NCBI GenBank assembly: GCA_050084985.1
Contig: JBITNC010000001.1
Location: 59,272,001 to 59,336,000 of the forward strand
Direction of reading: 5' to 3'
Length of the DNA: 64,000 nucleotides
Origin: Nageia nagi
Lineage: Eukaryota; Plantae; Pinophyta
The position numbers were made by a program, and so were the translations under genes. Position 1 is the first letter of the stretch, and each line of letters opens with the position of its first letter. Positions 23,501-62,680 of this stretch are shown piece after piece. Below the pieces are notes generated by a model, which did no database searches, was not told the origin of the DNA, and saw only the letters and a program-made list of their open reading frames with translations.

Positions 23501-26500
23501 CTTATTTTCAAAAGAATCTTCCTTGAAAAATTCCTTCCTATACTGGGTGATCATGTGGTATTAGATGCTCTTCATTTTATCATGCAATGAACTTTTAAAT
23601 TTTATCTTAAACCCTAAGTTATTCTCAACATGTTTGGCTAATACATATACTTTTTTTCTTTGAAGTGTATTTTGGAGCATGCATGTTAGCCATCACATGA
23701 ATATCATTGTGTAAACTACTAATAAACTTATGGAATTTCTTGAATTGTACTTTTTAGAGACCTCTAGAACATATTTTATTAATCTCATATATTTCCTATG
23801 ATATTTTTCAACTAGCTTGTTTCTTTTCCCAATTCTATTAATTTCATCAAACATTTCCATGATGAACTTGTTTGACACAAAATTTTTCCTAAATCTACTA
23901 AGGAAATTCTTCGATGGCACATCCTTAGTCTCCATTTCTCTATCCTCTAGAAGGTTTTCCCACTATTCTAAGGTTAAATATTCAAGTAGCATTACAACCC
24001 ACTAATCTTTTTGATAGGTTTATAGATTTCTAGTCTCAAAATGGGTCTTATGTTCTTTCATCCAAGCTTTGACAATGTCACCTAATTTTTCCCCTATAAA
24101 TTCCATGGCTGAAATTATTTTCTTGAGATTATGGATCATATTCATTAGTTCATAACTTTTACCATTCTTAAGTTTCTTAAAATTTTCTTACTATTGTTGA
24201 ATCATATTGAACTATATCTTAGGAATCATAATAAACCCATGATAATGGATTTTCTTTTTAAGGTCCTCCACATGTGTCTTGAATTCTTCTAAAATTCACA
24301 ACCTTTAAAAATCTAGATATTGCTTTCTTGGTTGAGTTTCCTTAAGATCATTATTCTTCAATTTTATTAATTGGTATCCTCAAGTATGGACATAACTCTT
24401 TCAATTTTTGACAAATCCATCCTTTTTATTCAAAACTAGGAGATTGATCCTTCAATTATATGTGTTTATTTTTATCAAAATATATGACTTATCCATTTCA
24501 TATCACATATGGAATAGACTTAAAAGAATCTTCCAATAAACTCAAGTTTATTAAAATACCTTATTTAAAGGTCTTATTTACATGCCATAACCATTATAAA
24601 TACATAATTATCCTCAATAAAATTATAATGACCCAAATCTTTAACCCAATATTGGATCTTCACTTTTGCACACTTCTCATAACTTAAGCATTGAGCACAA
24701 AATCATTTATTTCCTTGAAAAAATACTTATTAATATCTATATATCCTATTTTCATGAATCAATACATAATTTATTTCAAGGAAAATCCAATACATATTGG
24801 AGACCTTCAATGTTCTTGATATCTTCAGTGTTTATATTAGCACCATTTTCCTTCAACCTTTCAACAATTGTGTGAAGTTTCAATTCCTCAATGCTTAGTG
24901 GAATTCCTTATTCTGGATATGCTTTAATAGGTAGCAAGAATCTAGACTTGTACTTTATTATCTCTTTAATTTTTAACTCATTGTATAATTTAAAATGATA
25001 ATCTACATTCCATTCTAGGAGATATTCATCAAATATGACTTCTTTAACTTAGATATTGTGGCTTACTTCATCCCTTGATTCATAGCCTATATTTTGCAAA
25101 TATATGTTTCTTCAAGCAAGTTGATTTCTTGTTTCTTCTTTAGGAGGAAAGTGTCTTCCCCTATATATTCTTGACATTCTTGCTCTTGTTCTTCCAACAT
25201 ATGGAAAATCTCTTATTCTTGAGGCAAAACTCCATTGACCAATGTTGATGAAATATCTCGTTGATTTTATGGTTCATAAAGTTAACTTTTTTAACAAATC
25301 ACCATGATAGTTTACTTGACTATTCATATTACCTTATTCTTTACAAGAATAATAAAAATAAATTACAATTAACACTTGAAATCATAAATATTTATTCTTA
25401 ATAATGCTCTATTTCTTATTTAAGAAAAAATAAATCTTAAGATATCTCATAACCTTATCAAGGTTATCCATTCTTAATTTTCTTATAATTACTAGTAAAA
25501 TCTTTTAACCAAGATGTTTATAATAGCTACTTTCATAACCTCTCTAGGGTTACAATTTTTTTATCAAACATATTTGGCAATAAGTATGAAGGTTTTTTCA
25601 AAAACATCCCTTAGAACTAGTCTAATTAAGAGAATTATTCTTTCATACCAACTTATTAAGGTTTCATCCTTTTTTGAGTGGCTAGCTCCTTAGATGTATA
25701 TTGGTAGATCTTACCAATAGTTTCCTCTTCTTGAGGGTACCACATACCTTATTATAGTTTTTTACCATCATCATGTATAGGTAGGTTAATTACTTTAGGA
25801 TTCTTCCTTTCCCTAACAAGACTATGTTTGATAGTCATACCTCTCTTATATTTTTGTGTAGATTCATATTTGTTAGGGTTTTCATGGAATACTCTTCCCA
25901 AGGTTATAAATTTAATTTGATGACTTAATACTAAGTCATGTTATGTATTTTAAGGATACTACTACATTTGATAAGTTACCTTGGTATTACTAAGATGTCA
26001 TCTTTTCCCAATAATAAAAGTTATTGGTTAAAAAATTCATATTACTTATGTAAACCTACACACCTAGGATCTAATACTGAATGTTAGGACTTGATTTTTA
26101 AACCTTAAAAATTGGCTTTGAACTTAATTCCAATCCCAAAAAACACATATGAAATGAGCATAATTATTTTTTGGACCAATATACAAATACACATTTACAT
26201 TCAATAATAAAATTTTATGGGCTACTTTTGAAGCATGAGATTGAGATCACATAATGGTTCCAAGTATTGTCATTCTTGAGTCATGATCTCATAATTAGAT
26301 GATCACACCATTTATCTCTTGATATTTAACCTTCTCATTAAATATCCTAAATGTCTTTCCAAGAATTTTCATCTTAGGAGATAATAGCCTTCTAGTCTCC
26401 TTGTCAACCCATCTTGAAGCATTATTTCTTACTGATGGTATCTTAACTTACCTGGATCATAACCATGATCAAGTTTGGAAATTTAAGTACTTTAGGGTCC

Positions 26501-28743
26501 TTCATGACCAATCTTGATAATTCTTCAACTATCCTTCTTGATAATCCTTATTCTCATCTTGAAGTCATGTGTGTTGAGAATGCCTTGAATTATCCTTATT
26601 TGACAATTCCTTGTTCTATTGAGATCTTCTTGAATTATCCTAACTTGATAATTCCTTGATCTCCATACAATTTTCTCAAATTATCCTAGCTTTATAATTC
26701 TTAGACCTCATAAAAGTATGCTCAAGACTTACCTAGGTTTTATCTAAGGTTTAATACCATTTCCTATGATTAATGACATATAAGGTCATGAATATATTTT
26801 CCATCCTATTTGGTTATGCTTAAATCAATATGCGTATTATAGATCAAAACACCAAATATGGTTTTCTTTATCTATACAATTATTCATACCTTTAATAAAC
26901 ATTCATCCCTTCTACTTATGCAATAATGAATTATATTTATATATCACCATTAATGTGTATTGCATAATAATAATGAAATGTTTCATCATCCATGCAATTC
27001 ATCCAATAACATATAATAATATTCTTTTTAATGTCATTCAATAGCCATCATGGTTATCATCACATAATGTCATCTAACCTTCAATTTCCCAGTAAATCAA
27101 TTCATATGAATATAATTCCAAGCTCTTATTATTGAATAGGAAAATCATCAAATATTTATCATATAAATAATGGATCTTGAATACCATTAACATATCATCC
27201 ATATATCATAAGGGTATTCCATACATGGATCCAACTTACACATTGTATATATGTAAAATACATCATAATTTCTCATTGTCTATTAATGTATAGTAACACA
27301 AGATTATACAAATAATCTTGTTATTACATTAATACATATCCAAAATCTTCATACAAGCATCCTTTATTAAATATGAAGTTACATCCTCAATTAATTAAAC
27401 TAGCAAGAATCCCTCATAAGCATGAACTAACCTTCCTTGGACATGTTAGCTCATAGTGGTTATTTGGATCATGAAAAATTTTATTTATTATGCATCTACT
27501 CATGCAACAATCTCAAAAGATGCCTAGAATGCTACTTCATTCCTAGGTTACTCAATTCACTTAGAAAACAAACTTTTCAATCTTAGAAAAAAGTAATAAG
27601 AGAAATCAATCAATCAAATATAGATTCTTAAAAGTGTTAAAATCACTTCATAACTAGATAATAAAAATAGTCTCTCTTGTCCTCAATTTTAAGATCCCAT
27701 TTTAAAATTGATGACCTAAGATCACATAATTTAAATTTATTCCCTTTGTTCAATTTTTTCATTCTAATTGCTAAGGAATAATAATAACATAATATTTCAA
27801 TAATTAACTAAATTATCAAAATAATTCAACACTACTTAATTCCTCATACGAAAATTCATATTGTACATACTATAGAATAGAGCATTCATAATAGTTATTC
27901 TTTAGAATATAACTACTTATGCAAAATTCTCTCAAATAGCAAACCTACTTCACAACATCTAGGACTACTCAACTCATCTTAAGAAAAATGGCAGTTTTAC
28001 TATCTTAAAACAAAGTGAAATAAATACCTTTAATTCTTAATTTCAAAGAATAAATTTCTCTTTTCTCAAATGACTATGCCATTGGTTCCATAAATTTGAG
28101 AATGTCATAGTATTTTGGCCATAATTTTTTACTTGGATATTCATTTAAGCCTTTTTTTAAATGTGCAAATTTTGAAGATCTACAACTTTGTAATGTCTCC
28201 TTTAGAATACAACATGTTCAAGGCTACAAATGTCATATTACAGATTGAAATTTCATTTTAATGTTTGACTAGATTTTCAACAATATGGCTTCAAACATTA
28301 ATTATCTAAGAATTTTATCAATTTAATAATTTAATTCACTTTCATCCTAAAATCATGGATTCCAAAAAAAATCAATCAATCAAGCCAAACTAAAACACAT
28401 ACAATTAGATTTTTTTTAAGGACACACTATGATTGAATATTTTACAATTATTTCTAAAATCACTATGATCTTGTGGATTCTAGTTAGATTTTTCTGAAAC
28501 CATAAATTAAACCTTACCAATTAGAATTTAGATTTAAACTAAATTAAAATTTGTAACCATATCTATTTTTAAATTAGGTATATCAAAACTCAGTAGAAAT
28601 CTATAGCAAGGGTTTTTTATCACAACCAAAATAATCAAGAATAAATCAAATCAATAAATCTTTTCACAAATCTTCTCTATTTTCATAGATCAAATTTTTA
28701 GAAATAATTTCTTAGAATCAATTACTCAAACTTTATTGTGGAC
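17593..28743 (-). mobile_element. Gag-only non-autonomous LTR element C: 3' LTR 17593-~22551, internal 22552-26067, 5' LTR from 26082 interrupted by Copia at ~28744
   Basis: 17593-~20420 aligns with 26082-~28743 (both start TGTTAGGAC); decayed PBS GGATCTAATACTG at ~26067-26080; PPT junction ATGACA|TCCTCCCCT at 22551. Confidence 0.8.
23600..24130 (-). pseudogene. Retrotransposon gag remnant (element C)
   Basis: ORF 23693-23935 NFLSRFRKNFVSNKFIMEMFDEINRIGKRNKLVEKYHRKYMRLIKYV fits the Retrotrans_gag pattern; upstream EFIGEKLGDIVKAWMKE. Confidence 0.65.
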
Positions 28744-31047: not shown

Positions 31048-33789
31048 TGTAATGCTCCACCTATTCTTGACTTCACAAAACCCTAAAATTACAAACCTAT
31101 TTTTTATTATTTAATTTCAACACTCGAATGTGTAGGATGGACAAGTAATCCATATGAGCATATTAATGTTGCTAGCTAGTTAGCACTCACATGGAAAATT
31201 AGTTAAATTTAAATTAACCAACCCTAATCAAAATCCTTTTGGTGTTCACTTCTTAATGCTGATCCCATTGGAAGACACCTCATAGGTGACTCCACCATTT
31301 CTATTCACAAAATGTGCAATAGATATTCTTATCATGGCATAGTGGTTTCCTACTCATGGTCCATATCACCAAAGAGAATGCTCTTCCATAAGGTTATGCA
31401 TCTTTTTAGATGATAACCTTTGATTGACATGTGCAGATAGATTTTCCTAGGAAATCTTCATATGAAATGGGTAAGCATCATCACCTATGGAATAATCATC
31501 ATACTCCCATTTACTAAATTGCAAGTAGTATGAATACTAGTTACCTTCACCTAGTAACTATATTTTTATTGATTTCTATCCTCATCTGACAAATTATCAA
31601 GGATATGAGACACTAACTTACCCATATCTATCTGCTAGGCTCACCATGAAATTCGATAGCCTCATGCCCATATCTTGGGGAGCCATGGGTATTGGAATAA
31701 TACCCTTGAGTGGTTTGTATAGTATAATTATTTTTTAAGCAAGATTATAAAGAAAAACCATCCCCTCTAACATTCCTAGAAATAATTGATTCTCAGATCA
31801 ATTATTGGGTTTTCTAAGTTTTATGCTTGTATCGAGTAGTAGGATGTTCCTCTAATCTAATTTCTTGCAAATAAACCATTTTTTACATTAATAATTATGT
31901 TTGATAAATAAGAACAATAAATTCATCAAATGTGTACAAGATATTTCAAAACAAGCTTTTTTATGAATTCATTAAAGAATATTCAACAATACTTTACTAT
32001 AAATATCTCATATGCATGATGTGACATGCTAAATATTACTTTAAAAGTACATCACATACCAAAGAATAATAACAAGCTTTGAGATATTGCTAAATATGGC
32101 TACTTCTAACAAGGAAGTGTTGCATAGAGTATATCATACTCAAGGGGTATTCTTTTTATATATCATTTAGTGAATTTATGACAACAAAGGTTTGACTAAG
32201 TTATCTTCTATAGGATTGAGGTCTACATTATCTTCTAGGGTTTTAGCACCTTGATTAATCTTTCTTATAAGATCATATATAAGCTTTAGGTTTCATCTAA
32301 GATTGTATCAAGTCATTATTAATTTAACTACTTCAAGGTAATTCATGCAAATAGCTTCATTGTTTCTTCAATGTTTTAAATTTAAGAAATTCATATCCTT
32401 ATTGAAGGATATGATACCATTATTTCTTTAATGTTGATTTTCATTATGAGATACTTATTATTTTTATCCACATACCCTTTATTGTTTATCATAAGAGAGT
32501 TTCCTTTGTAACATTAGACTATCCATAAGTCACATTAGGATTATATCATAATCAATTCAAGTTGGGGAATGTAGAAATTATGTTTTTTACCAAATAATTA
32601 ACTTCATATTAGTATATTTAAGGTCCTTATAGTGCTGTTTATTTATCTTTCCAAAAGATTATTTGTATTCTCACAAGCCATCTAAATACATTTAGGAGTA
32701 TAACATAGGGTGAACAAATTGAACTTGAATTCTAGTTTATCATTAACACCTACTTACATTCCTTTGCAAATGACTATACAGTCAATGGGCAATGTCTTCA
32801 CTTCATACCCTAATTTGTTACATGATGATAATATTCTATAATGAGCTAGGGAACCCTTTTTATACCTCACAATATATAAGCCATTCAATTACATAAGGGT
32901 CCCCATACAACTATCAAAGAGGGTTTTTATCATATCCTTATCAAATTTATCTTATAAGGTATTCAATAGATCTTTATCCTCTTGATGTAGCTTATTGTCA
33001 TCTTCACCTTCTACATTCCTCCAAGGATCCAATATTCATTGGATATTGATACTAAGAAAGGATCTTGATTTTTGAGGATCAAGACAACTCTTTTGACCAA
33101 AATGCATCCTATATTAACTACATCATATTTCATTCCTTCACATGTAGTTTATTGACAATTCAACAATTAATACACTATTCTTGGACCTCATGAGGTTTTA
33201 TTTTATTTCTAGAACTACTTGCCTTCCTTGGTAATAGGGTAGATTTTCATATATAGTCATTTTACATACATCAAATCTACTTCAAAATAATATTATTTAC
33301 TCAAATGAACATATCACTATTCCATAAGAATCATCTTTAAAATAGTTCTAACATTATTTATCTTCAATTTGGTACTACTATTTAATTACATGATTCGTAC
33401 TCAAATATTAACATTCAATAAATTACTTTGACATAGTTGTTATTCGAAGTAATACTATTAATAAAATACCATCATCATGGTTCACCCATTATCTTATAAG
33501 TATCTATTCATACTTATAAACATTGTTTATGAGTATACATCCATTCTCAACTAAACATCATTCAATCATATTTTCACCTTTTTAAACTCTCCTAAAATTC
33601 AATATAATTTTTTTCCATTTTAAAAATTTTGTAATCCCTCTATACAAAATTATTTCAATATATTTATTGTAATCTCTTTATAAACTACAAAATATTAAAA
33701 ATAAATATTAATGGTAGCTTTGCATAGTAACTATATATAGCAAGTTTCAACCTACACACCACATGTTTTGTAGAGGTACTCATTTATTA

Positions 33790-34620
33790 GAATGGCTATG
33801 TGAATTGTTTGACAAAATGCCAATTCGAAATGTTGTCTCATGAACCATATGATTTGCAAGATATACACACAATGGTTATGGTAAAAGAACCTATAATTTG
33901 TTAGATGAAACATCGATGCAATCTCATGGTTTGCAATGATTGCGAGATATACTTAAAAGGCTTACATTAAAAAGGGTTTGCAAATTGTTTGAAAAAATAC
34001 CTCATCAAAAATTAGTTTGAAGGATCTTAATAATTATGCATTATGCACAAGATAGATACATTGGAATGGATGGTGAATTGTTTGACAAAACCACTCCAAA
34101 ATGCTGCCTCTTGAACTGTAATGATCAGATATGAATAAATGGATAAGTTGGAAAAGTATGCAAATTTATTTTATGGGATACCTCATCGGAATGTCGCCTC
34201 ATGGATCGTAGATTGATAAAATTGATATAATAAAAAATCCTATGAATGGTTGATAAAGTGTTTCATCATAATTCACTATCAAGGGTCAAAATGATGTACA
34301 ATAAGAATATGTTGGAGAAATCTATGAATGGTTTAATATAATGCGCTATTGAAAGGTAGTCTCATGGTTCGCATTGCACAAAGAGACATTATGAGAGGGC
34401 CTAAAAATGGCTTAACAAAAAGGTTTTACCAAAATGAACTTTCATGGGTTGTAATGATCATAGATAAGAACAAATGAATGTGTTAGAAAGGCCTACGATT
34501 GGTTTGGCCACATGCTTCATTGAAATGTAGTATGAAGGATGTTAGTGTTCATACGATATGCAAAAGTATGGATAAAAAATATCTACAAAGGATTTGGTAA
34601 AAGCCTCTTTGAAATGTTGA
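33790..34620 (+). pseudogene. Degenerate PLS-class PPR motif array inside the Tekay 3' LTR
   Basis: CELFDKMPIRNVVS*..ARYTHNG; DAISWFAMIARY; KLFEKIPHQ; LFYGIPHRNVASW; YEWFNIMRY*KVVSWFA; YQNELSWVVMII; ~80-93-nt spacing. Confidence 0.88.
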
Positions 34621-36744
34621 GCCAAAATAGAGGAGAGCCAATGGTCGAGAAGCAATCAAGATTAAACTCAAAAAAATATTTTTTCATAGTAAAGCTTTCA
34701 AAAAAAAACTTCCCTAGTACACATCACCCTTTCAAATAGTCTTAAGTGAAATCAAACAAAATGGAAGGGTACCAAAAGATGTCTCAATGTAATTTTTGTT
34801 TTTAATTTTTCTTTCAAGTACTATGTTCAAATAAATGGTTGACATGAATTCACAAGATCATGAATTTTTCTTTAATTTAATCTTTCCTATCTCTTCTTTA
34901 AATACTTGCATACATGTATGGATATGTAATGCTACCCTACTCTATACTTATACTAAAATCCAAAAATATTCGCCCTTTTTTTTGAATGTATCTTACAATA
35001 CTTATATCCCATATCGATGATAATTTGTTGTTCTCTATGCTATATCTAGGCATCACCATCTCTTGTCAAGTATTAGGGCACATTCACTATGCAACCCACC
35101 TTACTTGCATGTGGTATCTCATGATGAGCATGCTCTAATTTTATTTGGAGACCTCTATCACATGAGTGTATTATCTCACATAAAGAACTTATTCTATCTT
35201 TATTCTTATCTAGGTTTGATAGTTTCTTTTGAATGCCAAATCTTAAAATCCATGATTTCTAGACCTAATTATTTCGATAGATTACTAAAATACTTGTATC
35301 ATCTTTTTACACATGTATTGTAACTGGTGTTCCTTAAATGCTAGAAAGGGTTGTTTAGATCCACTTCCCATATCAATTTCTTAGGTCTATCCTCATATGA
35401 AGTACTTATTCATATACTTATTTAAAATCCTAATAATTGAGTAAGTTAGGTTTGGTATTTATTAAATGTAAGACATGAACATGACCCATTATTATTTCAA
35501 TAGTATAGTGCAAACCATATATACAATGAACACATTGAAATATTTGTATTGAAATAAAAGTATAAATATAGGATTAAACCATACTTAGTGTGATGCTTGC
35601 CATGACAATATCTTAGGTCAACTTTAATCCTAATTTTTAAGTTCTTACATGCATCATAAAATGTTTTCACTTAGACTCACTTAATAAAAATTATTTTGGT
35701 AATAATTATACACTTTGACATCCTTATTATTTGTTAGGTGGGAGATATCTACACCTAGGATAAAATTTATTCTTTTAATGATCAAATGGTCACTTTCTAT
35801 GGTAAGTCCATTTATAACAATGATGTATATATATTTGTACCATAATTTGGTGTAAAATAAAACAAAATCTAGTTAATGTAACTTGCCATGACATGTCGGC
35901 TACATTCCTTGATATCCCTTTTGATGTTCGATTACGTACAATTCTTCTTATGCCCTATCTTACAAATAAAATATTAACTTCAAAAGTAATTTGTCAATGG
36001 TTTCATACAATACATCAATTATGTTTATTACATCCAATGAATGCAATCGTACGAAAAGTCTTCATCTTCATCCATGGAATCTTCATGCCATCTTCTTCTC
36101 GTGATCATCCCAAAGTTACAATAATAAGTGGTTGTGAGTACTAGGAGAGTTTTTTAGCATTATGAGGATCAAGAAAGCTCTTTGTATGACCATTTTGACT
36201 TCTACTATGCACTATGCACAACTTCATTCAATAAATTCTGTACACCATTTAATTAAGTTATACTCTATATATGATCTCAGGAGGTTTTATGCCTTGTAGA
36301 AGCTACCTCTCTTCCTTGACCATAGAGTATAATTTTATTCAAAAAGGGAAATACTAACATTCAAGTAAGGTCCAAATAAAAGTCGATCCTTATTGAAAAA
36401 CCTTGTTAACTATTAATTGTAGGGGCATATTCAATAAATACCATGATCTAAATAATAACAAGCTTAAATATCTTTAGTAACCTTCTCATTGTTAAGGCCT
36501 TTACAATAAATACCATGTTCCATGCATCCTCATAATTCTACTTTTATTAACAAATTCAAGTCTAATTAACTTCATAGGGTCTATGTTTTCAACCTCCTTT
36601 ATACCATAAATGGTTTAATTTAAATAATAATATCTTCCAAGACAATTTGTTAAGTCCTTATTGAATCACTTTAAGTTACTGTAAATAAACATTATCTAAG
36701 TCTAGATTAAAATCTAAATAAAGACTTATAGGAGTGTCAATCAG

Positions 36745-38230
36745 GTCTATGGAAGGTACTGTGAAATTTTTGATGAAATGCTCCATCGATATGCCACCAA
36801 AATGGATATTCTGGAAGGGTCGATGAAGGATCACAACATAGATATGAGAATGCTTCCTCTTATATTATCAAAATGGTACACATGCAGATGCGTTTAAATG
36901 GAAACTGTGAGCTATTTAGCAAAGTGCCTCATTGAGGTGGAGTCTCGTACTAGAAAAGTTTGTAGGACTTGCCCCAAAAGAAAGACAAGTTGTTACAAAG
37001 TATGCACAGGATGGATGTGTAAAAAGGGTATGTAAATCATTTGCCATTTTGCCTTACCAAGTGTAAATGGAGACCAAGAAATTGTTTGACAAAAAGCTTC
37101 CTCCATTAATAATCTCATGGAGTTCCTTACATAGGATAACAATAAGTTATACGAGGAAATGTCTCATTAAATGTAGTGTAATGTTTTGCAATGTTCGCTC
37201 GATTTGCACATACTGGATACGTTATAGAGGCCTGTTCATTGTATTGATAAATTTCCTTATTGGCGCTCATTGGATGCAACCTGAGAAATAGAAGACTTGC
37301 AATTGGTTTGACAGGATACCTCATCAATATGTGGCATTATGGGCAGCACAAGCTAGATATGTTGAGAGGTTAAAAAATAAGAAAATTGATGGACGTATCC
37401 CTGATATGTCGTCCCATGTATCAAACGATCGGTAAATCGCTTGACAAAAAAAATTAACTCAATAAATGAAGTCAACAATGATTGTGTTGAAGGAGATCAA
37501 TGGATTTGCCTGGTCTAATGCCTTGTTGACATGAATATCAACACGAATGGAAGGGTTCTATGAGTCATTTGCAATCTATTGAATGCAATGGGCAGTGGAT
37601 AGAAAAACTTATGTATTGATTGACAAGAAGTAGTCTCATGGATGGCATGGAACACATTCAGGATCTCTCGCCAAAATGCCTCACCGAAACCAATCTTACA
37701 TGGGTCGTAGGTTAGGCACAAAATGGGTAAATATTATCAAATGCAAAGTAGGATGAATATACCTATGTCTTATTTGAAATAATATTTTATCTAAAATGAA
37801 GACCCATCGCCAGTATTGATCATAGGATACGTACAAGAACGGGTCCTTTGAACGCCTTCAGTTATTGTCCATAGAACATGCACTAATCTGATACATGGGT
37901 GGGAGAATACAAAAGCTTATTAAGTGCCTTATTGAGATGGAATCTCATGAAATGCAAATGATCACACTTAAAGGACTGGTACATGGAGGTATCAATACCT
38001 CATCAATATGCCTTCTCATTAAGTGAAAAGGTCATCGAAAGTACGCCAAACAGACAGGTTTGGGAATCCCATAAATTATCCCACCTTTACCCATCAAAAT
38101 TCAACCTTATGGAATGCCAATGAGTGTAGGGTGATCATGCCAGAATGGCCTAATAGGATGCCTTATTGATTTGCAATATTTTTGGATAAAAAAAATCATA
38201 GAGATGCACAAAATGGATACCTTAAAAGTG
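36745..38230 (+). pseudogene. Degenerate PLS-class PPR motif array inside the element D 3' LTR
   Basis: CEIFDEMLHR; CELFSKVPH*GGVS; ORF 37067 KKLFDKKLPPLIISW; CNWFDRIPHQYVALW; QEVVSW; AKMPHRN..VG*AQNG; LIIGYVQ; HQNSTLWNA. Confidence 0.85.
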
Positions 38231-41200
38231 AAGACATGGCACAAAAAAATAGAGGTATTGACTAGTAATTTCCCTACTTTGGCATGTCTTTCAAAATGTT
38301 ACCCGTGACTTCCTATGCAAGTAAGATAAGTAATTTAAAATACAATGAATGTCCTTTCACTACTACAAATAATTTAACATACATGAATTGTACACTACAC
38401 TCACATGCAATATTAAGCAAGTAAAAATAAATATTATACTATTCAAAGGATACTACTCATGAAATGGTAGTAAGAAATTTTCATTTAAGCATTCAAATAG
38501 GCTATACATCCTTTAATACATTTAGAAATTTCCAAATAAGCTTCAAATTTTAATTAATCATTTTAGTATTAGAGACTAAAATAAAAGAAAGGCACCTAGA
38601 ATTTAAGAAGGTGCTTCCTCCTCTAGAGGACTTTAGACCAAGATTTTGAGAAAGAGGGAGAAGAGAATAATATGATGCCTAATTCCGAAGGGTTTCCATT
38701 TATTTATAGTTTGAAGGGTAGTCTAATCCATCCAAAACAAATACTATTTATCCAAGTTAGCTACTTTATATGTAAGGTGTGGGGATTTTATTTTTTTATG
38801 AGAAGGTTTGGGACAATTTTGTTTTTAAGTTTTCATGACTTCCAGAAATAATTTCACACCTAAAATTAGGAAATAAAAGATTTTATCAATCATGTTACAC
38901 CTAATTAAAGGAGACAAGTTGTGTGGGGTATCTTTCTCAATTATTTTGGCAAGGCACTAAAATAGCCTTATAACCCCCATGAAATGACAAGAAATCCTTT
39001 AACCTTAGAGTTTATCTTTCTCCTAAATTTATTTTTGTAAAACAAAAAAAAGTTCATTAGTAAAAATTTAAAATTTGAATGGGTGGAATATTCCTCATTT
39101 TAAAAAGTGCCAATTTTATTTTTCCAAACAAATTCAAGAATTCATACCATATTTTAACATAATATTTACCTGTGGAGGCCACTCATCCTACAAGTTAAAT
39201 TTTGTTAGTGCACATTCACACATACACAAGCATCACACACAACATAGGGATCGAATATCATACAAAATTGTTATGTAGCTATATGATCTATGAAAGGTCT
39301 TTATGATTCTATCAGCAATTGAATGTCAATCATTTCTTTCCTCTTACCAATCTATTCCTATAACCACTTATCTTGGTTCCCTATTATCTCTATTCTGATT
39401 CTCTCATTAAATCAACCCTTAACCTTTGTTACACAAAATCTTGAACCCAACATCAATTTGACACAACATAGCATATAAATAGATATCATTAGTCATCTCA
39501 TGATCTCATTCACATTAAAATTATTGAAGGTAGTCAAGAAATAATGAATTTGAATAAAGAATTCAAAATTATGAATGAAACAGGGTCATCACATACTTCC
39601 CCCCATAGGAACAACACAATCCTTTATGTTTCTTTCTTCTCTATTCATCAATTTACCTAAAAACACATATTATGAAATAATATAGTGCATCAAATTCTTA
39701 CATCGGATTCAATATTTTCAAAGGACATTAAGATGATCCAACTTGAGTCTATGTGAATGACCAGTTAACCCTCAAGTGGGTTAAGTTCATCAATAACCAA
39801 AATTGATCAACCCCTTCATTTCTAGTGTTCACCACTATAATCCTATTCAGAGTAGGTTGAATGTATTAACGTAATCCCACCATTACTATTTGCTAACCAA
39901 TCAACTACAAAATCCCATTTGATCACAGCAATAGATTTTGGTTTCATCTTGGGACCCATATCACCCATGATGGCACCAATCCAAAATAAGAGCATACAAC
40001 GTATGAGAATATCATCCATAATACTATGGGTAAAGCGCATCACCCCTAGAATAACTATCATTTTCAATCATAAAACCATGATAAAAAATACCTAAAACTT
40101 ATATCCTCACCTAATATAGTACATATTTCTTGGTTACTACCCCTTATCTTGAGGTAAGATGACTAACCTTCCCATATCTATTAGTTAGTATCCCTAGTGG
40201 TCCGAGCTTACATGCCCATATCTTGGGAATCCAAATGTCTTTTGGAAGTAACAACTTCCTTATCATGGTGTTATAAAAAATCATCATTTTTCATCAATGT
40301 TATTCAATAAATATAGCAAATATATGAATTAGTCATAAACATTATAGCTAATCTATCAATTACAATAGATCCTCACTCGATATTTCAAAATATAAAGATT
40401 ATCAATAGACAATTTTTCATTCTTAGGCATGAAACCATCATGTTCAAAAATTTATGTAATATCCATATCTTCATGTGAGATTTACTCACTATCATCATTA
40501 GGCCCTATATTTTTGGATATAATAGGCATAAAATTGGATTAATAATCCTTAAAAATCTTGATTTATATCCTTCTACTTAGTACTTAGGTTTGAATTAAAG
40601 AAAATCATCAGTTCTACTTCTACAAAGAGTTATCCTTTCAGGAGAATATTAATAATAAATGTTAATCACATCTTTATTATTGATTTAACACATTAACAAA
40701 GTATTCATCATTAAGGGATTCATCCCTATTTATGCTTACCATTGAAAGTCCAATATTACCTGAACTTCCTTCATTAGAGTTGATCAATGTATCTTGGAAA
40801 AAATTCATCCCAAACTGAGTTAAAAGTTTTTGTATCCTCGAGTTTTCTCCTTCCAAAACTCAAACTCCTTAAGAGAAGTGTTAGTACTTATTAACCCTAT
40901 TTCTTGAATAATTTGAACTTGTTCCTAAATTTCCTATTTTTGGATAAGAAACCTTTCATTTTCTATGGCCAATTGATTTTGGTCGATCATTAATATGACA
41001 TTTTCTTGATTCAAAGTGTCTCTCTGAATCCTAAGAGATTCTCTTTGTTCTCCTTCAATGATCAATTGTTATCATAAGAAAGCATTTTCATTGTCAAACA
41101 ATATTTTTCTTATTAAAATTTCTTAGTGATACATTCTTATAAATATTCTACTCATATGAAGTACTATTGGGTTCCCTAATGATTTATCATCATTTTTCTC

Positions 41201-44200
41201 ACTAAAATTTATAGCTCAAACAAGAAAGGTAAGTAAGCAACCATTGAATTTTAGAATATTTCTCTAATGTTCACACATCATATTTTGAGAGTACAAACAC
41301 AAACATTCACAAATAGGCTAATCATTTATTTAAATCAATCAATAGTTTAGGAAAAAAGGAAATTTCCCCCATTTAGGGTTCATCTTCCTTATTATCCTTA
41401 TCATTAGGTGATCTTGATGAGTTCAAAGAGACCCTAATACCATGTTGAAGTAACAATTTTTCATACCTTCCATCCCACATTCTCTATTTTTCTATTTCCT
41501 ATAAGGAGGCACTAAGATGTACGAATGCTTGTTCTTGCACACTTTGAATTTGTTGGATCAATTTACACTCCTCATTGATGAGGTCAATCATCAACTTATT
41601 ACTCTTCGAGGATATGAAATTCCAAATTCTTTCACATTCTTCTCTTTTCCTTCAAAGATGCCTTATTTATTCTTTGGTGTTCTTCAACTATTATCATAAA
41701 ATTCATTCTCCATGATAGCTTGCATATTTTCCATTATTCATTGTTAGTTATTTGACCCTATTTTTATATAAGTGGTGTAATTTCAAGAAGTTTTGACTAG
41801 TTGGATAGGATGTGGTATCATACATGCAAACTTAAATTGCAATATCATATTGCAATTTTATCAACCATAATATCCCTTAATAATATCTTTAGTATCTTAT
41901 TAGATGCTCCTTCGAGGGTACAAATACTCTCCATACATAATTTCTTGGTGGATATTTAGTGTTGGAGTCTTTTTCATCCATCCATAAGAATATTTTCATA
42001 CACCACTTGTAATTAGTATGTATTCCTTCCTAGATAGGTAATAAATTTATAGGTAGAGTTTCTATTCTATCTACACATTTTGATAACAAATCATGGTAAT
42101 TCATAAAATAAATCATTATGTAGCACATCTCTTTGTTCTCCCAAATGGGATAGAGGAAAATATTATCTATCATGGGGTACATACTTTCTTGTCGCAACAT
42201 TCCTTAGAGGTGATGGATTTCCTCCTTCGTTAGGATTTAGCTATTTTTCCTCTATATCCTTTGAATAGTTTTGGCTATTGCATGATCACTCAACTTAAAA
42301 TTTATGAGCATTTAGGCTTGTTCATTCAATTATTTTTATATCCTAATCTAACTTGGAGAGTTATTCTACATATTTCGTATAATCCAGTTCTGGTGAGACT
42401 TGTAGCATACATGGGTCCTTCCTTAATATCTCCAAGGGAGAGTTTGGTACCTCTTACTATCTCATGGATGCTTTGGAAACAAAATTTGCCTTAGGATACT
42501 ACCTATTCCTTCACAATTTGTAAGGGATAGGGAAATTGTATTCTTTCCCACCTATTCGCATCCTTCTACTATTTTTGAGCTATTTCTCGAAACATGATTA
42601 CTTTTATTTCTAATCCTCCTACATATAATACATCAGATCAAGCTTAAAAATCCTTCAATTCTAATTTATTTGTTAATATATTTTACTATGTTGACTCAAA
42701 GTTATTCGACTAGGATAACTATCCATCAATTTTTTTGATGGAATCTAATAATGATGTAAAGAAATCCTAATCTTTTGTAAGCTATCCACTTTGCTTATTA
42801 GTGGGAATTGTTTATGTACTTAGTAATGAAATAAAAAGATACTTATATTTCTCATAAAATTTACATTGTAAAAGGATTTGGTTTTATTTAGTGCATATAA
42901 AAAATTCTTCCTTTCCATTCATTCTTAATCTCTAACTAGACTCTCTTCCTCATTGATCATCTCCTTGGGTTCCTCATCGGATAATGAAATCTTATTGCTA
43001 TTTTCTCATAGATATTTAATGATTTCTAGAGTGAGGGTAGGTATATTTCTACCATATAAAAGAGAAAAATCCCTATTTGCACTAGGTTTATTGATCATCT
43101 AGTAATTTCCCTTAACTTGAGTGGTTACTTCTTGTACCTTTTTCTTTCTGTAGATCTAGAAAGCTTTGCATGGTGATATCATCATTCATTTCTACAATAT
43201 TGTTAGAGATTTATTCTTTTATTTTTTTTGGTGATTATTCCCTTTTCTAGATCTCTTTCTTCCACCATATTGGAATAAATAACATATGCATTTAAGATGT
43301 ATTCTAAATTTCTAAGTTATATTGTCATACTCAAGCAAAATAAAAATTTTATTGATAACATTTTTCATTACATAACATAGTAATACATTTTATTGGGTCT
43401 ATTACATTATATATTCTAGCCCTTTGATGAAACATAATTCTTTTATATGTACATTACTACCCATTGAATTCAACATTTTAGTCACCATCCATAGATTCAT
43501 CTCATGGTTTAGGCCTAATAGCAGGTGGAGTTGTGATCTGAATAGGGTTTTCTTCTACAAGAGGAAGAATTGCACTTTTAAAAATTATAATATCTTTGAT
43601 TTTATAATATCTTTGATTTCACCTTCTCCATATAAATTTTCATGGAGAGCTCTTATTTGACTTATAATTTCTTCTATAAAGACAACTCTTGTGTGAACCT
43701 ATTTTGTTGAATCCTGATTTATCTTAGCTAGGTATTCATTCATCCTAAAGATTTGGTTCCTATTTTGTTCTGCTAGGGAAACATGTCTCTCTCTAGTTCT
43801 TTTATATAGTTCCTGAGAGATTTAATTTGTTGTAATTCATCTATTTCCCTCTCAAGCCTCATAGTATCATTTAATGAAGTATCACATAATCCATAGAATA
43901 AAAGTGCATCATCAATGTTGGATAGGATATCAAATTCTATAGGCAACCAAGTCCAATACCATCCCATCTTGATATGTTCTAAAGTTTCTTACAAGATGAA
44001 AAATAATAAGTTAGGCGTATTTCTTGTGCACTACTTCACCCTAGTTCCTAGTAGACACTTGCTTTGATACCAATGTAACACTACCCTACTCTATACTTAT
44101 AATAAACCCCAAAATTTTCAACCCTTTTTTTTAAATGTATCCTGTGATACTTATATCCCACATTGATGATAATTTATTGTTCTATATGCTATATCTAGGC

Positions 44201-45824
44201 ATCACCATCTCTTTTCAAGTATTAGGATACATTCACCACAAAATACCACCTCACTTGTGTGTCATATCTCATGATGAGTGTGCTCTAATTTTATTTGGCA
44301 GACTCTATCACATGAGTGTATTATATCACATAAAGAACTTATTCTATCTTTATTCTAATCTAGGTTATATAGTTTTTTTTTGGATACTAAATCTTAAAAT
44401 CTATGATTGCTAGACCTAATTATTTCGATAGATTACTAAAATACTTGTATCATCTTTTTACACATGTATTGTAAGTGATATGCCTTAAATGCTAGAAAGG
44501 TTTATTTAGATTCACTTTCCATATCAATATCTTAGGTCTATCCTCATATGAACTACTTATTCCTATACTTATTTAAAGTCTTAATAATTTATTGAGTTAG
44601 GTTTGATATTTATTGAATGTAATACATGAACACACCCCAATATTATTTCAATAGTCTAATGCAAATCATATATACAATAAACACATTGAAATATTTGTAT
44701 TCAAACAAAAGTATAAATATAGGATTAAAACATACTTAGAGTGATGCTTTTTTCACTTAGACTCACTAAAAATTCTTTTGGTAATAATTATACACTTTGA
44801 CATCCTTATTATTTGTTAGGTGGGATATATCTACACCTAGGACATAATACATTCCTTCAATGATCTAGTGGTCACTTTCTATGGTAATTCCACTTATACA
44901 AATTATGTATATATATTTCTACTATAATTTGGTGCAACAAAAATAAAATCTAGTTAATGTAACTTGCCATAACATGTTGGCTACCTTCCTTGATATCCCT
45001 TTTGATTTTGGTTACATAAAATTCTTCTTATGTCCTATCTTACAACTAAAATATTGACTTCAAAAGTAATTTTTCAATGGTTTCATACAATACATCAATT
45101 GTGTATATTACATCCAATGAGTGCAATGGTATGGAAAGTCTTCATCTTCATCCATCATATCTTCATGCCATCTTCTTCTCATGATCATCCCAAGGTTCCA
45201 AGAATAAGTGGTCATGAGTACTAGGAGGTATTTTTTAGCATTATAAGGATCAATACAACTCTTTGTATGACCACAATGACTTCTACTATGCACTATGCAT
45301 AAATTCATCCAATAAATTTCGTACACCATTTGATTAAGTTATACTCTATATATGATCTCAGGAGGTTTTACACCTTGTAGAAGCTACCTCCCTTTCTTGA
45401 ACATAGAGTATAATTTTATTCAAAAATGAAATACTAACATTCAACTAAGATCCAAACAAAAGTCTATCCTTATTGAAACACCTTATTAACTATTAATTAT
45501 AGGGGTATATTCAATAAATACCATGATCTAAATAGTAACAAGCTTAAATATCTTAAGCTTCTCATTTTAAAGGCATTTCCAATAAATACCATGTTCCATG
45601 CATCCTCATAATTTTACTTTTATTAACAAATCCAAGTCTAATTAACTTCATAGGGTTTATGCTTTCAACCTCCTTTATACCACAAATGGTTTAATTTTAA
45701 TAATAATATCTTCCAAGATAATTTGTTAAGTCCTTATTGAGTCACTTTAAGTTACTATAAATAAACATTACCTAAGTCTAGATTAAAATATAAATAAACA
45801 CTTAGAGGATAATCATTAATCGGT

Positions 45825-47290
45825 CTATGGAAAGATCATCTGAAATGTTTGATGAAATGCTCCATCAATATATCACAAAAATGGATATGCTAAAAGGGTT
45901 AATGAAGGGTCACAACATGGATATGAGAATGCCTCCTCTTATATTATTGAAATGGTGCATAGGAAGATGCATTTAAAAGGAAACTATGAGCTATTTAGCA
46001 AAGTACCTCATTGAGATGGAGTCTTGTGCTAGAAAATTTTGTAGGACTCACCCAAAAAAAAAAGACATGTTTTTACCAAGTATGCATAGTATGGATATGT
46101 AAAAAGGGATTTTTATCATTTAACATATTTCCTTTCAAGTGTAAATGGATACCAATGAATCTCCATTAATAATCTCATGGAGTTCCTTACATAGGATATC
46201 CAAAAATTATATGAAGGAATGCCTCATTAAATGTAGTGTAATGTTCTATAATGTTCACCCAATTTGCATACATTGAACACATTATATAGGCATATTCATT
46301 GTATTAAAAACTTTCCTTGTTAGTTCTCATCAGATACAATCTAAGAAATAGAAGACTTGCAATTGGTTTGATAGGGTACCTCATCAATATGTGGCCTTAT
46401 GGGTAGCATAAGCTAGATACATTGAGAGGTAAAAAATAATAAAAATGATAGATAGCTCCCTAATATGTATTCCCATGTATCAAATTATAGGTGAATCTTT
46501 TGAAAAAATAATACCTCACTAAATGAAGTCAATAATGATTGTGTTGAAGGACATTGATGGATTTGCTCGATGTAATACCTCATCGACATGAATATCAATG
46601 TGGATGGAAGGGTTCTATGAGTCATTTGTAGTCTATTGAATTCTATGCACACTAGAAAAAAAAATTATGTATTAATTGATAAGAAGTAGTATCATGGATG
46701 GTATTGAAAACATTGAGGATCACTCTCCAAAATGCCTTAGCAAAACCAATCTTACATGGGTTGCAGGTTAGGCATAGAATGGGTAAATCTTATCAAATAC
46801 GAAGTAGGATGAAGAGAATTATGCATTATTTAAAATAATTCTTTTTCTAAAATGAAGACCCATCACCAATATTGATCATAGTATATGCACAAGAATGGGT
46901 CCTTTGAACACTCTTAGTTATTTTCCATAGAACATTAACCAATCTATGTGTGGATAGGAGAAACAAAATCCTATCAATTGCCTTATTGAGATGGAGTCTC
47001 ATGAAATGCAAATGAATGTAATCAAGAACTAGCATATGAAGGCATCAATACCTCATTGATCTGCCTTCTCATTAAGTAAAAAAGGTCATTGAAAGTATGC
47101 CAAACAAATGGGTTTGGGATTCTAAAAAATTATCCAAATCTTTACCCATCAAAATGCAACCTTATGGAATGCCAATGAGAGTAGGGTTATCATTATATAA
47201 TAGCCTAATAGTATACCTTATTGATTTGTAATCTTTTTTGATACAAAAATAATCACATAATATGCACAAAATAGATTCCTTAGGAGTGAA
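45825..47290 (+). pseudogene. PPR motif array copy in the element D 5' LTR
   Basis: Aligns with 36745-38230 and shows more CpG decay. Confidence 0.82.
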
Positions 47291-49899
47291 GATATGGTAT
47301 AGAAATAGAGGTATTCACTAGTCATTTTCCTACTTTGGCATGTCTTTCAAAATGTTACCTATGAATTCCAATGCAAGCAAGACAAGTAATTTAAAATACA
47401 ATGAATTTCCTTTCACCACTACAAATAATTTAACATACATTTATTGTTCCCTACACTCACATGCAATATTAAGCAAGTAAAAATAAATATTATACTATTC
47501 AAAGGATACTACTCATGAAATGGAATTTAGTAGTAAGAAATTTTCATTTAAGCATTCAAATAGGCTATACATCCTTCAATACATTTATAAATTTTTAAAT
47601 AAGCCTCAAATTTTAACTAATCATTTTAGTGTTAGAGAATAAAATGAAAGAAAAGGCACTTGGACTTTGAGAAGGTGCTTCCTCCTCTAGGGGAATTTAG
47701 ACCAAGATTTTGGGAAAGAGGGAGAGAGAATAATATGATGCCTAATTCCTAAGGGTTCCCATTTTGTTTATAGTTTAAAGGGTAGTCTAATGCATCCAAA
47801 ACAAATAATATTTATCCAACTCATCTACTTTATACATAAGGTGTGGGGCTTTTATTTTATTGTGAGAAGGTTTGGGATAATTTTGTTTTTAAGTTCTCAT
47901 GCCTTCCAAAAAGAATTTCACACCTAACATTAGGAAATAAAAGATTTTATCAATCACGTTACACTTAACAAAAGGAGACAAGTTTTGTGAGGTGTCTTTC
48001 TCAAATATTTTTTTCAAGGCACCAAAATAGCCTTATAACCCCTATGAAATGACAAGAAATCTTTTAACCTTAAAGTTTATCTTTATCCTAAATTTATTGT
48101 TGTAAAAAAAACAAAGTTCAATAGTAAAAAATTAAAATTTGAATAGGTGGAATATTCCTTGTTTGAAAAATTGCAATTTTATTTTTCCAAATAAATTCAA
48201 GAAATCACACCATATTTTAACACAATGTTTACCTACGGAGGTAACTTGTATTGCAAGTGAATTATTTTTAATGCAAATTCACACATACATAAGCATCACA
48301 CACATTATAGAGATCAAATATCATAAAAAATTATTATGCAGCTAAATGATCTACTAAAGGTCTTTATGATTCTATTAGTAATTCAATGCCAATCATTTCT
48401 TTTCTCTTACCAATCCATTCTTGTAACCACTCATCTTGGTTCCCTGGGATCTCCATTCTGATTCTCTTGTTAAGTTCAATTGTAACCTATGTCACATAAA
48501 ATCTCAAATCCAGCATCAATTTGACACAAAATAACATATAAATAGATATAATTAGTCATCTCATAATCTCATTCACATTAAAATTATCAAAGGTAGTCAA
48601 GACATAATGGATTTTGCATTCAAAATTGTGAGTGAAATAGGGTCATTACAAGACAAGGTGTATAAACATTCACATGCAAGGATATCAAATAATTACAAAT
48701 AATATACTTTCTCTTGGTATAATTAATGTAATACCATTAATAAAAAATAACCTCCTTAATATTATCACTAACTCTTAAACAAGCATTTTCTCCTTCAAAT
48801 ATACTAAAAAAATTATCAAATGAATTTTAAAACTTGGCTAAGCATTTTAGCACTAGTGTTTAAAATGCTAGGAAAAGCACCTAGACTTTAGAGGAGGAAG
48901 ATTATTTCCTTCACATCTTATTATACCAAGCTTGGGAGAAGAGTAGAAGTGTCATAATGATCATTCACCTAGGTATTTATAACCAAAATTTGGAATAGTC
49001 CCTCCAAAAGTATAACTATTTGTCCACTTCACATGTTTTTGTTAGTGAGGTTAAGGTTTTCATTATTTTATGGTAGGATTTTAACAATTTTATTTCTAAT
49101 TCCTGTTTCTTACAAAATAATTTTCACACCTCACATTAGGCTCCAAAGTGTATGGAAAAGGTTCATCAATAATTTCACACAACTAACATATAAGATCAAA
49201 ATGTATGGAGATGATTCCTCTATTTTTTTTTTGCAAAATACCAAGATAGACTTTCAAGTACCATAAAATATCAAAATAGTTTTTATCCCTAAATGTTTAT
49301 TTTCACTCAAACCCTAGGATTTTATTATTTGTAAAGACTAAAATGCTTTGGTAAAAATTCAAATTTAAGTATTTAGAATATTCTTTCCAACTTCAAACAT
49401 AGTCATGTAATTTAGGCATTCTCATCAAGTTTTTGGCACATAAGTTTATCTACGGAGACTACCCATCTTGCAAGATAAATTTTTGTTAATGCAAATAAAA
49501 CCATTATACACATCACAGGGATCAAATTTCATGCACAATAATTATGATATGTAGCTATATGATCTACAAAGGTCCCTATGAATGTCAATGAATCAATGAT
49601 AATCATTTCTTCACTCTTACCAATCTATTCATGTAGGCAACTCATATTTGGTTCTATGGGGTCTCTAATCTAACTCCTAGAATGAGTTAACTTGTAAACT
49701 ATGTTATAAAAATCTTATAGCTAAAATCAAACTGATACAAATATTATATATAAACTTTCACAATTAATCATCTCAATTACATTCAAATTCCTAAAGAAAT
49801 TTAGGTCATAATAAGTGCAATTGGGTGAGTTGTTACATACTACCCCCCTTAAAAGGAACATAGTCTCCTGTGTTCTAAATTATAAAAAATAAAGTTTTA

Positions 49900-52730: not shown

Positions 52731-52738
52731 TTAACTTT

Positions 52739-53370
52739 TGTTAGAATTTTAACCTTTACTTGGTTAGTTTAGTGGGAATAATTAAATTATTCTCATTTAC
52801 TTAGGTTAGAGGTAAATTATTTTATCCTCTATTTTTTATATATGTATTTGTGGTGTAAGGAAATATTCCAAAGGAATCCCTACATCTATCTTTTACTCTT
52901 ATGGACTTATAATTCTTCTCATAAATATGTGACAATAATTCTTTTTAATTCCTCATTTAAGATGATTATATAATGAGAGTTACACTAATTTGTACTCCTT
53001 CTATAATGGGTGTTATTTTATAACTCCCACCTTTTGTATTGCAAGGTGAAAAGTTTAGATTATAGGAGTTACTTAGTAACTCCCTCTCTTCACCTCTATT
53101 TATTGAGGTGCCTTCTCCTCTCTTCATCATCTTGGAATTCTCCTAAATCTTTGTAATGAGCTCTTTATAGCTCTCTTGTATTCTTGTTTGTTCTTTTTCC
53201 ATTCTTGCAATGTAGGAGGTTTTTTTCTTTATTTTTCCCCCTTAACAAATTTCTTGTCTCTTTGCATTTTGTGATTTCTCACTCATGATGCTATAATTTC
53301 TAACCTTGCATATTTTTTACTTTCAAGTTTTAGTAATAATTTTATTTTGATCCTCCTAAAATTTCTAACA
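52739..53370. mobile_element. Solo LTR (632 bp) in the Tekay PR-RT linker
   Basis: TGTTAGA...TCTAACA termini; perfect TSD ACTTT (52734-52738 and 53371-53375). Confidence 0.88.
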
Positions 53371-53375
53371 ACTTT

Positions 53376-54850
53376 GATTGCATATATCATTTCCCTTTTT
53401 TCTTATGTTTCTTTTAACTTGCATGGTTATGATCATGTAAGGCTCACAATGTAGATTCTATATTAGGTTTGAAACACATCAATGTATTCTACCCATCTTT
53501 CTTGAAATTCAATTAAGGCCTTATGAGCCATTAACAATCCATGCCCAAAATGATTTCATAAGAGGCTAAAGGAACCACATACAAATCCCAAATAGTAGAT
53601 CCCTTAGGTAATTATATTTCGACATCCCTAAAATACTATCTAATAGGGTACTTTTTTCTAGATCCAAACTCCACTTTCCATCCATTTGTCAAAAATTATG
53701 GTGTCTTAAACATATCTTTAACTAAGGTATTTGAAATAAAACTATTTATAGCACCACAATCTATCAAAATCCTATATAATTTATTAGAAACTTTACCAGG
53801 GATTTAAAGAGGAGTGGCTTTTCCTATAGTGTATGTTGATCCGATAGCTACAAAAATATGGTGTTTTTTTTATTGATCTACCTTCAAAGGACATTGATTT
53901 GCATAGTGAGATCTATCATAGTTCCAAAATCCATCTCTAGGACCCTTTTTTTATTCAAAAAACTTATCCTTAGTTACATTTTGATTAGTCCTTTTTTCTC
54001 AAAATCCTTGGCTATGGTTCATGAAACCTTAGCTTCCATTACCAAGGTTATATTTTTGTTTACATAACTGCTAATTTTTCCTCAAAAAACTCTTCTTCTT
54101 GCTATTTTTATTTCCAAATTTCCTTTTCTCAAACTTGGGTGGATTAACATCTTTATAACCAATATTATTATCCTTTATCTTCTTATTGCTTGGTTATTGT
54201 GCTTGATGTTTTTCACTTTTACTCTTTTGATAGATTTTCTTATCTTTTTCCTTTGGAAGGTTATAGTTCATGAAGGTTTTCTTGATACTCTAATTACCCT
54301 TTTCTCTCTTTGCAAGTTCATATGCTTCTTCAAGCATTTTGGGGCTTAATACAATCACCATAGTCTTGATCTTGGGGTCTAACCCAACAAGAAACCTATG
54401 AACCTTCATATGATTCTTATCTTCAAAAACATATTTGAGAAACATGACAAATTTTTGATGATAGCTTTGGACACTCATGGATCCTTATTGTAGGGTATAA
54501 TATTCTTCATCCTTTCTATCATAATAGAATTAGGGAATGAATCTTTTATGGAATGTTATAAAAAAATTTGTCCACTTTAGATACTATATCCCATGCTTAA
54601 TCTTGTAAGCATTACACCATTCTATTGCAATATCCATAAAATTATAAGTAGCCCACATATTTTTAGTTTTCATAGATAAGTTCTTCATAGAGAAGTATTT
54701 CTCTACTTCTTCTAACCATACTTTAGCTTACTCACCCTCTTGATTACCATTAAATATCAGGATTTGGGATTTCCTAAGATCTAAAGCAAGCTCTTGCTCA
54801 ATCCTTTGGTTGATTTGGTCATTTTTCCCTTCAAGTATTATTTGTTCTAG
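53376..54850 (-). pseudogene. Tekay gag and aspartic protease
   Basis: ORF 54290 MSVQSYHQKFVMFLKY...KVHRFLVGL (gag); ILIDCGAINSFIS and EIILGMD (protease). Confidence 0.85.
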
Positions 54851-62608: not shown

Positions 62609-62680
62609 CTTTCAACTAACATAAAATATCAAAATAGTGTTTATCTTTCAACTAACATAAAATATCAAAATAGTGTTTAT
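62609..62680 (+). repeat. 36-bp tandem duplication private to the Tekay 5' LTR
   Basis: CTTTCAACTAACATAAAATATCAAAATAGTGTTTAT twice; single copy at ~49250. Confidence 0.85.

Follow-up and report, generated by a model that had tools for sequence, protein, structure and literature searches.

A 64-kb stretch of contig JBITNC010000001.1 of Nageia nagi (hereafter the window; all positions refer to it) contains two nested long terminal repeat (LTR) retrotransposons, here named T and D. T is an old Ty3/gypsy element, and D is an old non-coding element that sits inside an LTR of T. Both elements carry in each of their LTRs, in the antisense orientation, the remains of an array of motifs resembling pentatricopeptide repeats (PPRs). 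According to the reading that we prefer, with a probability of about 0.75, a PPR gene fragment was captured once by an ancestral LTR and has since been passive cargo in both families, decaying faster than the LTR around it.

Nested elements and homology of their LTRs

Self-alignment of the window and direct reading of the junctions revealed two nested LTR retrotransposons, both on the minus strand (Table 1). D is inserted into the LTR of T, an element of equal age. The pentanucleotides bordering D, GGATA and AGACA, are each one transition away from GGACA, the intact unoccupied site in the other LTR of T (62011-62015), and therefore represent a 5-bp target-site duplication (TSD). The two LTRs of D are 87% identical and have the ends TGTAA...TCACA / TTACA, i.e., TG...CA. 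The primer-binding site (PBS) of D was read directly at 44061-44072 (minus strand TGGTATCAAAGC), 1 nt from the right-hand LTR, and the polypurine tract (PPT) at 39594-39609 (minus strand CCTATGGGGGGAAGTA), where it adjoins the left-hand LTR. The PBS resembles the tRNA-iMet type, which most LTR retrotransposons of plants have.

The interior of D differs from that of a coding element. Of its 19 minus-strand stop-free pieces with at least 35 residues, 10 were scanned with Pfam, and none contained a gag or pol domain; tblastn with the gag-pol pieces of T gave no match there, and nhmmer found no DNA similarity between the interiors of D and T. T is approximately as old as D, yet six of its 10 pieces matched retrotransposon domains, with E values from 8e-12 to 0.06 (four clear matches with E below 1e-4). 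Since D is without recognizable gag-pol coding capacity, we classified it as a non-autonomous element similar to the large retrotransposon derivatives (LARDs), which were reportedly described by Kalendar et al. in 2004.

The relationship between the LTRs of D and T was evaluated in four pairwise comparisons of their copies. The homology outside the array that the first-pass annotation of this stretch had pointed out was evident: positions 38353-39547 of D matched the final 1.2 kb of the LTR of T with nhmmer E values of 1e-51 to 1e-56, at approximately 63-69% identity and a Kimura two-parameter (K2P) distance of approximately 0.5. A weaker block connected 36086-36337 with 58129-58382 (nhmmer E = 4e-7). 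The common LTR start on the plus strand, TGTAATGCT, was likewise found in both elements. The LTRs are mosaic in that their left portions, 1.2 kb in D (34925-36085) and 1.9 kb in T (31048-32986), did not align past the first dozen or so bases, and the two LTRs share ancestry over approximately two-thirds of their length towards the right end of the window.

Both arrays are located between homologous LTR blocks, with an anchor-to-anchor length of 2016 nt in D and 1690 nt in T, and the arrays themselves are homologous. The right copy of D matched the array of T at two sites (46076-46418 with 33857-34217, nhmmer E = 1.2e-6; 46681-46765 with 34351-34453, E = 0.02), and the left copy matched the right copy of T at 37080-37241 (E = 0.003). 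All of these matches were collinear, whereas 150 shuffles of either array of D yielded no match at all. The PPR units of D and T paired one to one in the alignment: IISW with AISW; NVV*C...FAHTGY with KLV*R...YAQDRY (i.e., NVV*CFAMFARFAHTGY with KLV*RILIIMHYAQDRY); and WFDRIPHQYVALW with LFYGIPHRNVASW, which the alignment displays as WFDRVPHQYVALW with LFYGIPHRNVASW.

The collinear homology of the arrays, together with the homologous LTR blocks on both sides, points to a single ancestral capture, in agreement with the first-pass annotation. The change in motif number that it had also proposed corresponds to indels of approximately 330 nt in the interval that the common anchors delimit. Since each element has the array in its two LTRs, the array already belonged to the LTR by the time that either element inserted.

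PPR signal in the arrays of T and D

As a yardstick, we used 30 loci that contain real PPR genes of the PLS/E class, which were retrieved from metagenome contigs with a degenerate pattern for FD[EK]MPER[DN]VVSWN and from which open reading frames were extracted; four of these were confirmed by Pfam (PPR E = 1e-48 to 1e-110, plus the E motif). The 31-residue S ("SS") motif of PLS-class PPR proteins is said to follow the nomenclature of Cheng et al. from 2016. A position-specific scoring matrix (PSSM) with 48 columns (residues) was built from 30 real S-motif junctions and was used for a six-frame scan of the window, with 1000 dinucleotide-preserving shuffles, which keep the composition, as a control.

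Judged by its sequence, the array of T is clearly derived from a PPR gene. Its PSSM scores rose to 32 bits, approximately 8.7 standard deviations above the mean, a level that was reached by none of the 1000 shuffles. The array matched the DNA of a real PPR gene (locus L023, nt 250-540; nhmmer E = 1e-6), and its autocorrelation peaked at 91 and 180 nt (z of 3.2 and 4.5, respectively). A search of the PDB with a piece of the T array placed a synthetic PPR-DYW protein on top, at an E value of only 0.18, and the Pfam PPR models (PF01535, PF13041, PF12854, and PF13812) gave no match at E up to 10 in five plus-strand stop-free pieces of T. Tandem Repeats Finder reported no tandem array in D or T, and therefore no recent amplification of the unit within the LTR.

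The PPR signal in D is real but weak. Across the 64 kb, the top PSSM scores were located in the arrays of T, and the arrays of D were over-represented among the next-best scores. The plus strand of 36700-38250 contained nine PSSM hits against 1.15 expected, and the sum of its top 10 scores was reached by none of the 1000 shuffles; enrichment was alike in the other array copy of D. The minus strands of the D arrays showed no PSSM enrichment over the shuffles, and the other G+C-richer parts of the window had no PSSM hits. When the yardstick PPR proteins were compared with the window by tblastn at a permissive threshold, the hits on the plus strand, counted in 1-kb bins, numbered 185 at 33-34 kb and 140 at 58-59 kb (left and right LTR of T), 46 at 37 kb and 23 at 46 kb (left and right LTR of D), and at most 17 in any other bin. 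The PPR-like strings that were first quoted are indeed present on the plus strand in mixed frames, with approximate starts as follows: EIFDEM at 36763, ELFSKVPH at 36909, KLFDKKLPPLIISW at 37079, WFDRIPHQ at 37301, AKMPHRN at 37667, and G*AQNG at 37710. Self-alignment likewise identified the copy given as 45825-47290 with the same stretch in the other LTR of D. By transitivity, the homology between the arrays of D and T and the PPR origin of the latter support a PPR origin of the former.

The detectable extent of the array in D was smaller than the 1.5 kb initially ascribed to it. The share of the 1000 shuffles that reached the observed PSSM score was 0.003-0.007 for 36697-37015, at most 0.004 for 37016-37360, 0.07-0.10 for 37361-37780, and 0.3-0.8 for 37781-38230, with 0.5-0.9 for the flanks (36300-36696 and 38231-38700). 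The signal covers approximately 36697-37360 and perhaps continues to 37780, where the best single site (37638-37730) scored 7.9; none is detectable in the remaining 450 nt. With 0.7-1.1 kb and about eight recognizable sites, the array of D cannot be called even longer than that of T, which comprises 0.9 kb and approximately 10 units. A hidden Markov model (HMM) of the C-terminal L2-S2-E1-E2 block, based on eight real PPR proteins, gave no signal in six-frame chunks anywhere in the window. A tblastn match at 37957-38118 (E = 8.4), considered as cargo reaching into the E domain, was rejected because this HMM was negative.

Decay of the arrays and alternative explanations

Every frame of the array is broken by stops and frameshifts, and the array is antisense to both elements. 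It is also the fastest-diverging part of both LTR pairs: the K2P distance between the LTRs of D was 0.187 in the array, compared with 0.108 and 0.123 in other LTR parts and 0.139 for the whole pair, and the distance between the LTRs of T was 0.30 in the array, compared with 0.135-0.16 in other parts. The K2P excess of the T array copies (33736-34071 versus 58871-59211) is larger than that in D and could reflect CpG decay or a disturbance near the insertion at 59211. Between the families, the array has been conserved much less well than the 1.2 kb at the LTR end. Given that the best block shared by D and T has a K2P of approximately 0.5 and that the array decays 1.5-2 times faster, divergence near saturation is expected, as was seen. 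The G+C content of the D array is 0.367 versus 0.29 in the flanks, and CpG is also higher; heavy methylation of the genome, acting on this higher G+C and CpG content, would account for the faster decay, and thereby for an array that is barely recognizable in D. The broken frames and the rapid divergence lend no support to the suggestion that the array has a role rather than being passive cargo. The array encodes no protein, and nothing in its sequence suggests a function. Because such cargo is copied along with the element, its persistence in the LTR needs no selection.

We favor a history in which the two families would carry, at the same relative position and antisense in the shared part of the LTR, what is left of the S-motif region of a PPR gene of the PLS class. 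This fragment would have entered the ancestral LTR once, possibly by an insertion or repair event or by a template switch, and would then have been copied passively at each retrotransposition, with indels producing the present difference in length. A nested DNA transposon as the source of the array was rejected, since neither terminal inverted repeats nor CACTA ends were found around the arrays.

The alternative that survives best, albeit an unlikely one, is a chimeric origin of the LTR of D: reverse transcriptase would have switched templates between two RNAs packaged together, one from a T-like element and the other from an unrelated element, and the PPR fragment would have come with the T-like part. 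Such an origin would fit the mosaic LTRs, in which the left parts are unaligned and everything to the right is aligned, as well as the internal regions of D and T, which have nothing in common; chimeric LTRs are documented in BARE-2 and Veju, and template switching is known as their route, e.g., in BARE-2 (PMC13317346). However, the shared part is so diverged (K2P of approximately 0.5) that any exchange would be ancient, and with one copy per family a chimera looks the same as ordinary divergence combined with turnover of the left part. In either case, the PPR fragment would have been captured in a single event.

Several results weigh against the history of one capture followed by passive carriage. 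The same Pfam PPR models matched none of 15 plus-strand stop-free pieces of D at E up to 10. Among 1.84 billion representatives, a phmmer search returned no PPR match to the longest of these pieces (37067-37288; 74 residues); its sole match, an Ig-repeat protein, was rejected as a chance match multiplied by the repeats of that protein. A PDB search with this piece returned tombusvirus p19 and a taste receptor at E values above 0.4, which were judged to be noise, and nhmmer found nothing between the D arrays and the DNA of real PPR genes. Every tblastn match in D had an E value of at least 0.34 (best 0.34, versus 3.7e-4 in T), and autocorrelation showed no lag near 93 nt and no clear period. 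The hit thresholds of the PSSM were set after the scan had been seen, although the threshold-free sums of the top 10 and top four scores are unaffected by this choice. The proposed PPR origin of the D array thus depends on a PSSM built for the purpose and on the transitive link via T. In addition, the comparison genes look like those of flowering plants and are not from the host, a point that bears on independent capture from two related host paralogues, which we consider unlikely. The apparent lack of function, finally, is deduced from sequence decay.

These negative searches, the high tblastn E values, the missing 93-nt period, and the empty stretch at 37781-38230 would all suit a second alternative, in which the PPR-like strings of D are a chance resemblance or a by-product of a G+C-richer LTR segment and only T is PPR-derived. 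We regard this as improbable: none of the 1000 composition-keeping shuffles reached the PSSM sums, the minus strand was unenriched, other G+C-richer parts of the window were without PSSM hits, and the D array aligns with the PPR array of T in register and at the syntenic position.

It is more improbable still that the antisense cassette has been selected, as a source of antisense RNA or small interfering RNAs (siRNAs) against PPR transcripts or as a decoy, to the benefit of the element or the host; its presence in antisense in two diverged families and the siRNA reservoirs that captured gene fragments form in maize, as described in PMC13317346 and bioRxiv 10.1101/777037, favor this idea, but no other part of the shared LTR region is conserved as poorly as the array, which also diverges fastest within both LTR pairs, the version in D is without detectable nucleotide similarity to PPR genes, no inverted duplication able to form a hairpin was found, and persistence in an LTR needs no selection. 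We give equally little credence to the broader proposition that several retrotransposon lineages in this genome recurrently bear antisense PPR cassettes in their LTRs under selection, and that D and T have kept theirs through their divergence. If it were true, young copies would use the cassette either to divert silencing or to produce antisense RNA or siRNAs engaged in cross-talk with the very large family of PPR genes. A new biological question would arise only if expression or small-RNA data showed the cassettes to be active.

Partnership of D and T, other features, and known systems

The pairing of T and D as autonomous and non-autonomous partners, as the first-pass annotation suggested, is plausible but unproven. 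In its favor, D is without gag-pol, and the two elements have cis-signals in common, namely an identical PBS, the PPT core GGGGGG[A/T]AGTA, the LTR termini, and the 1.2-kb LTR block. Against it, this type of PBS is generic, the best shared LTR block is only approximately 65% identical, and the interiors are unlike, with no common sequence detected by nhmmer next to the PBS, in the leader, or in the interior. Moreover, the copy of T studied here is itself dead.

On the minus strand of T, Pfam domains were found in the order gag, reverse transcriptase, RNase H, and integrase; the Tekay label that the first-pass annotation gave to T is putative. The PBS of T (55277-55288) is identical to that of D, and its PPT reads CCTTTTAAGGGGGGTAGTA. 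The C-terminal integrase piece (49948-50220, minus strand) reads ...FHVSLLRK...ECLVQWDKYSKSSSTWKN and appears chromodomain-like by eye; the Pfam Chromo model did not match it at E up to 0.1. The only PDB match of this piece was an amaranthin-type agglutinin (PDB ID: 1jly, E = 3.6e-4), and the Pfam Agglutinin model also matched it (E = 0.03); this similarity is probably spurious.

Two extra segments are confined to the right LTR of T. The 1.9-kb segment at 59211-61155 splits the PPR array of T, and the left LTR runs uninterrupted across its site (34061-34922 continues 31313-34071). The 0.9-kb segment at 55561-56443 contains 5.4 tandem copies of a 21-nt unit at 56212-56325. An isolated PSSM hit in this unrelated segment (55714-55857, with DELPLKNVVTY at 55789-55821) was judged to be due to chance. 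Elsewhere in the window, direct repeats of approximately 2.6 kb (17591-20419 and 26080-28742), approximately 85% identical and 8.5 kb apart, are probably the LTRs of a third old retrotransposon, whose DNA shows no relationship to that of D and T. Positions 1-3654 contain direct repeats with an offset of approximately 1.9-2.0 kb and 77-82% identity (1-938 with 1944-2876; 786-1617 with 2805-3654), which represent either a duplication in tandem or a further LTR-like structure that the edge of the window truncates.

Table 1. Positions of elements T and D, their parts, and their PPR arrays in the window
Feature	Position	Strand	Evidence
Element T, old Ty3/gypsy LTR retrotransposon, host of D	31048-63247	-	Self-alignment; termini, PBS, and PPT read directly; Pfam domains
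T left LTR, split by D	31048-34924 plus 48656-49837	-	Self-alignment
T internal region	49838-55289	-	
T right LTR, with two extra segments (55561-56443 and 59211-61155)	55290-63247	-	
T Ty3_capsid	54293-54484	-	Pfam
T RVT_1	52075-52467	-	Pfam
T RT_RNaseH	51445-51773	-	Pfam
T Integrase_H2C2, weak	51061-51198	-	Pfam
T left LTR, about 10 tandem 31-residue S-type PPR motifs, antisense to element	33736-34630	+	PSSM, tblastn, nhmmer, period
T right LTR, copy of PPR array	58871-59210 plus 61156 to about 61700	+	
Element D, non-autonomous LARD-like LTR retrotransposon inside LTR of T	34925-48650	-	LTR pair, TG..CA termini, PBS, PPT, empty site
TSD of D, left copy, GGATA	34920-34924	.	
TSD of D, right copy, AGACA	48651-48655	.	
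D left LTR, 3' LTR in element orientation, 4669 bp	34925-39593	-	
D internal region, 4.5 kb, without recognizable gag or pol	39594-44073	-	
D right LTR, 5' LTR in element orientation, 4577 bp	44074-48650	-	
LTR block common to D and T, first 1.2 kb of LTR in element orientation	38353-39547	.	nhmmer
D left LTR, core of decayed PPR-like S-motif array, antisense to element	36697-37360	+	PSSM, clustered tblastn, nhmmer to array of T
D left LTR, possible continuation of array, marginal (AKMPHRN / VVG*AQNG site)	37361-37780	+	PSSM; weak collinear T match (34351-34453 / 61449-61580)
D left LTR, remainder of interval first noted, no detectable PPR signal	37781-38230	+	PSSM shuffle share; C-terminal block HMM
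D right LTR, same array, more decayed	45776-46840	+	PSSM, nhmmer

The case of D and T belongs to a known kind. PPR (PF01535) is among the commonest domains in genes captured by LTR retrotransposons of rice and sorghum (Jiang and Ramachandran, 2013; PMC3726574). As in those captures and in maize Bs1, a non-functional piece of a cellular gene was multiplied with the element, whereas the fragment in D and T lies within the LTR instead of the internal region, is antisense and below Pfam detection, and is common to two diverged LTR families. Patchy pieces of host genes inside repeats are also typical of Pack-MULE, Helitron, and CACTA cargo; the arrays of D and T differ from these in being present in both LTRs of both elements, with no terminal inverted repeats or CACTA ends flanking them.

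With respect to its architecture, D resembles LARDs and BARE-2, the known non-autonomous partner of BARE-1 (PMC13317346), in having 4.6-kb LTRs, a non-coding interior of approximately 4.5 kb with a PBS and a PPT, and an LTR related to that of a coding element. It differs from them in that its partnership with T is putative, the best LTR block being approximately 65% identical and no leader or internal sequence being common to the two. The array of T resembles PLS-class PPR proteins in its units (...LFD.MP.RNVVSW..MI.GY..., with a period of approximately 93 nt) and aligns with residues 84-180, approximately, of the real PLS/E-class proteins L023 and L001, and D retains recognizable remnants of these units. 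Unlike a PPR gene or pseudogene locus, the arrays are a fragment with broken frames, in which no L2-S2-E or DYW part is detectable.

Against this background, the modest addition made by D and T is cargo that is common by descent to two diverged LTR families. PPR-like strings in giant plant genomes call for caution in annotation, since they can be LTR cargo and not PPR pseudogene loci, and PPR cargo below the detection level of Pfam can be traced to PPR genes via a better-preserved relative. D and T would thus provide an example of host-gene cargo that entered an LTR once and has persisted as neutral baggage in families that have diverged to approximately 65% identity or less.

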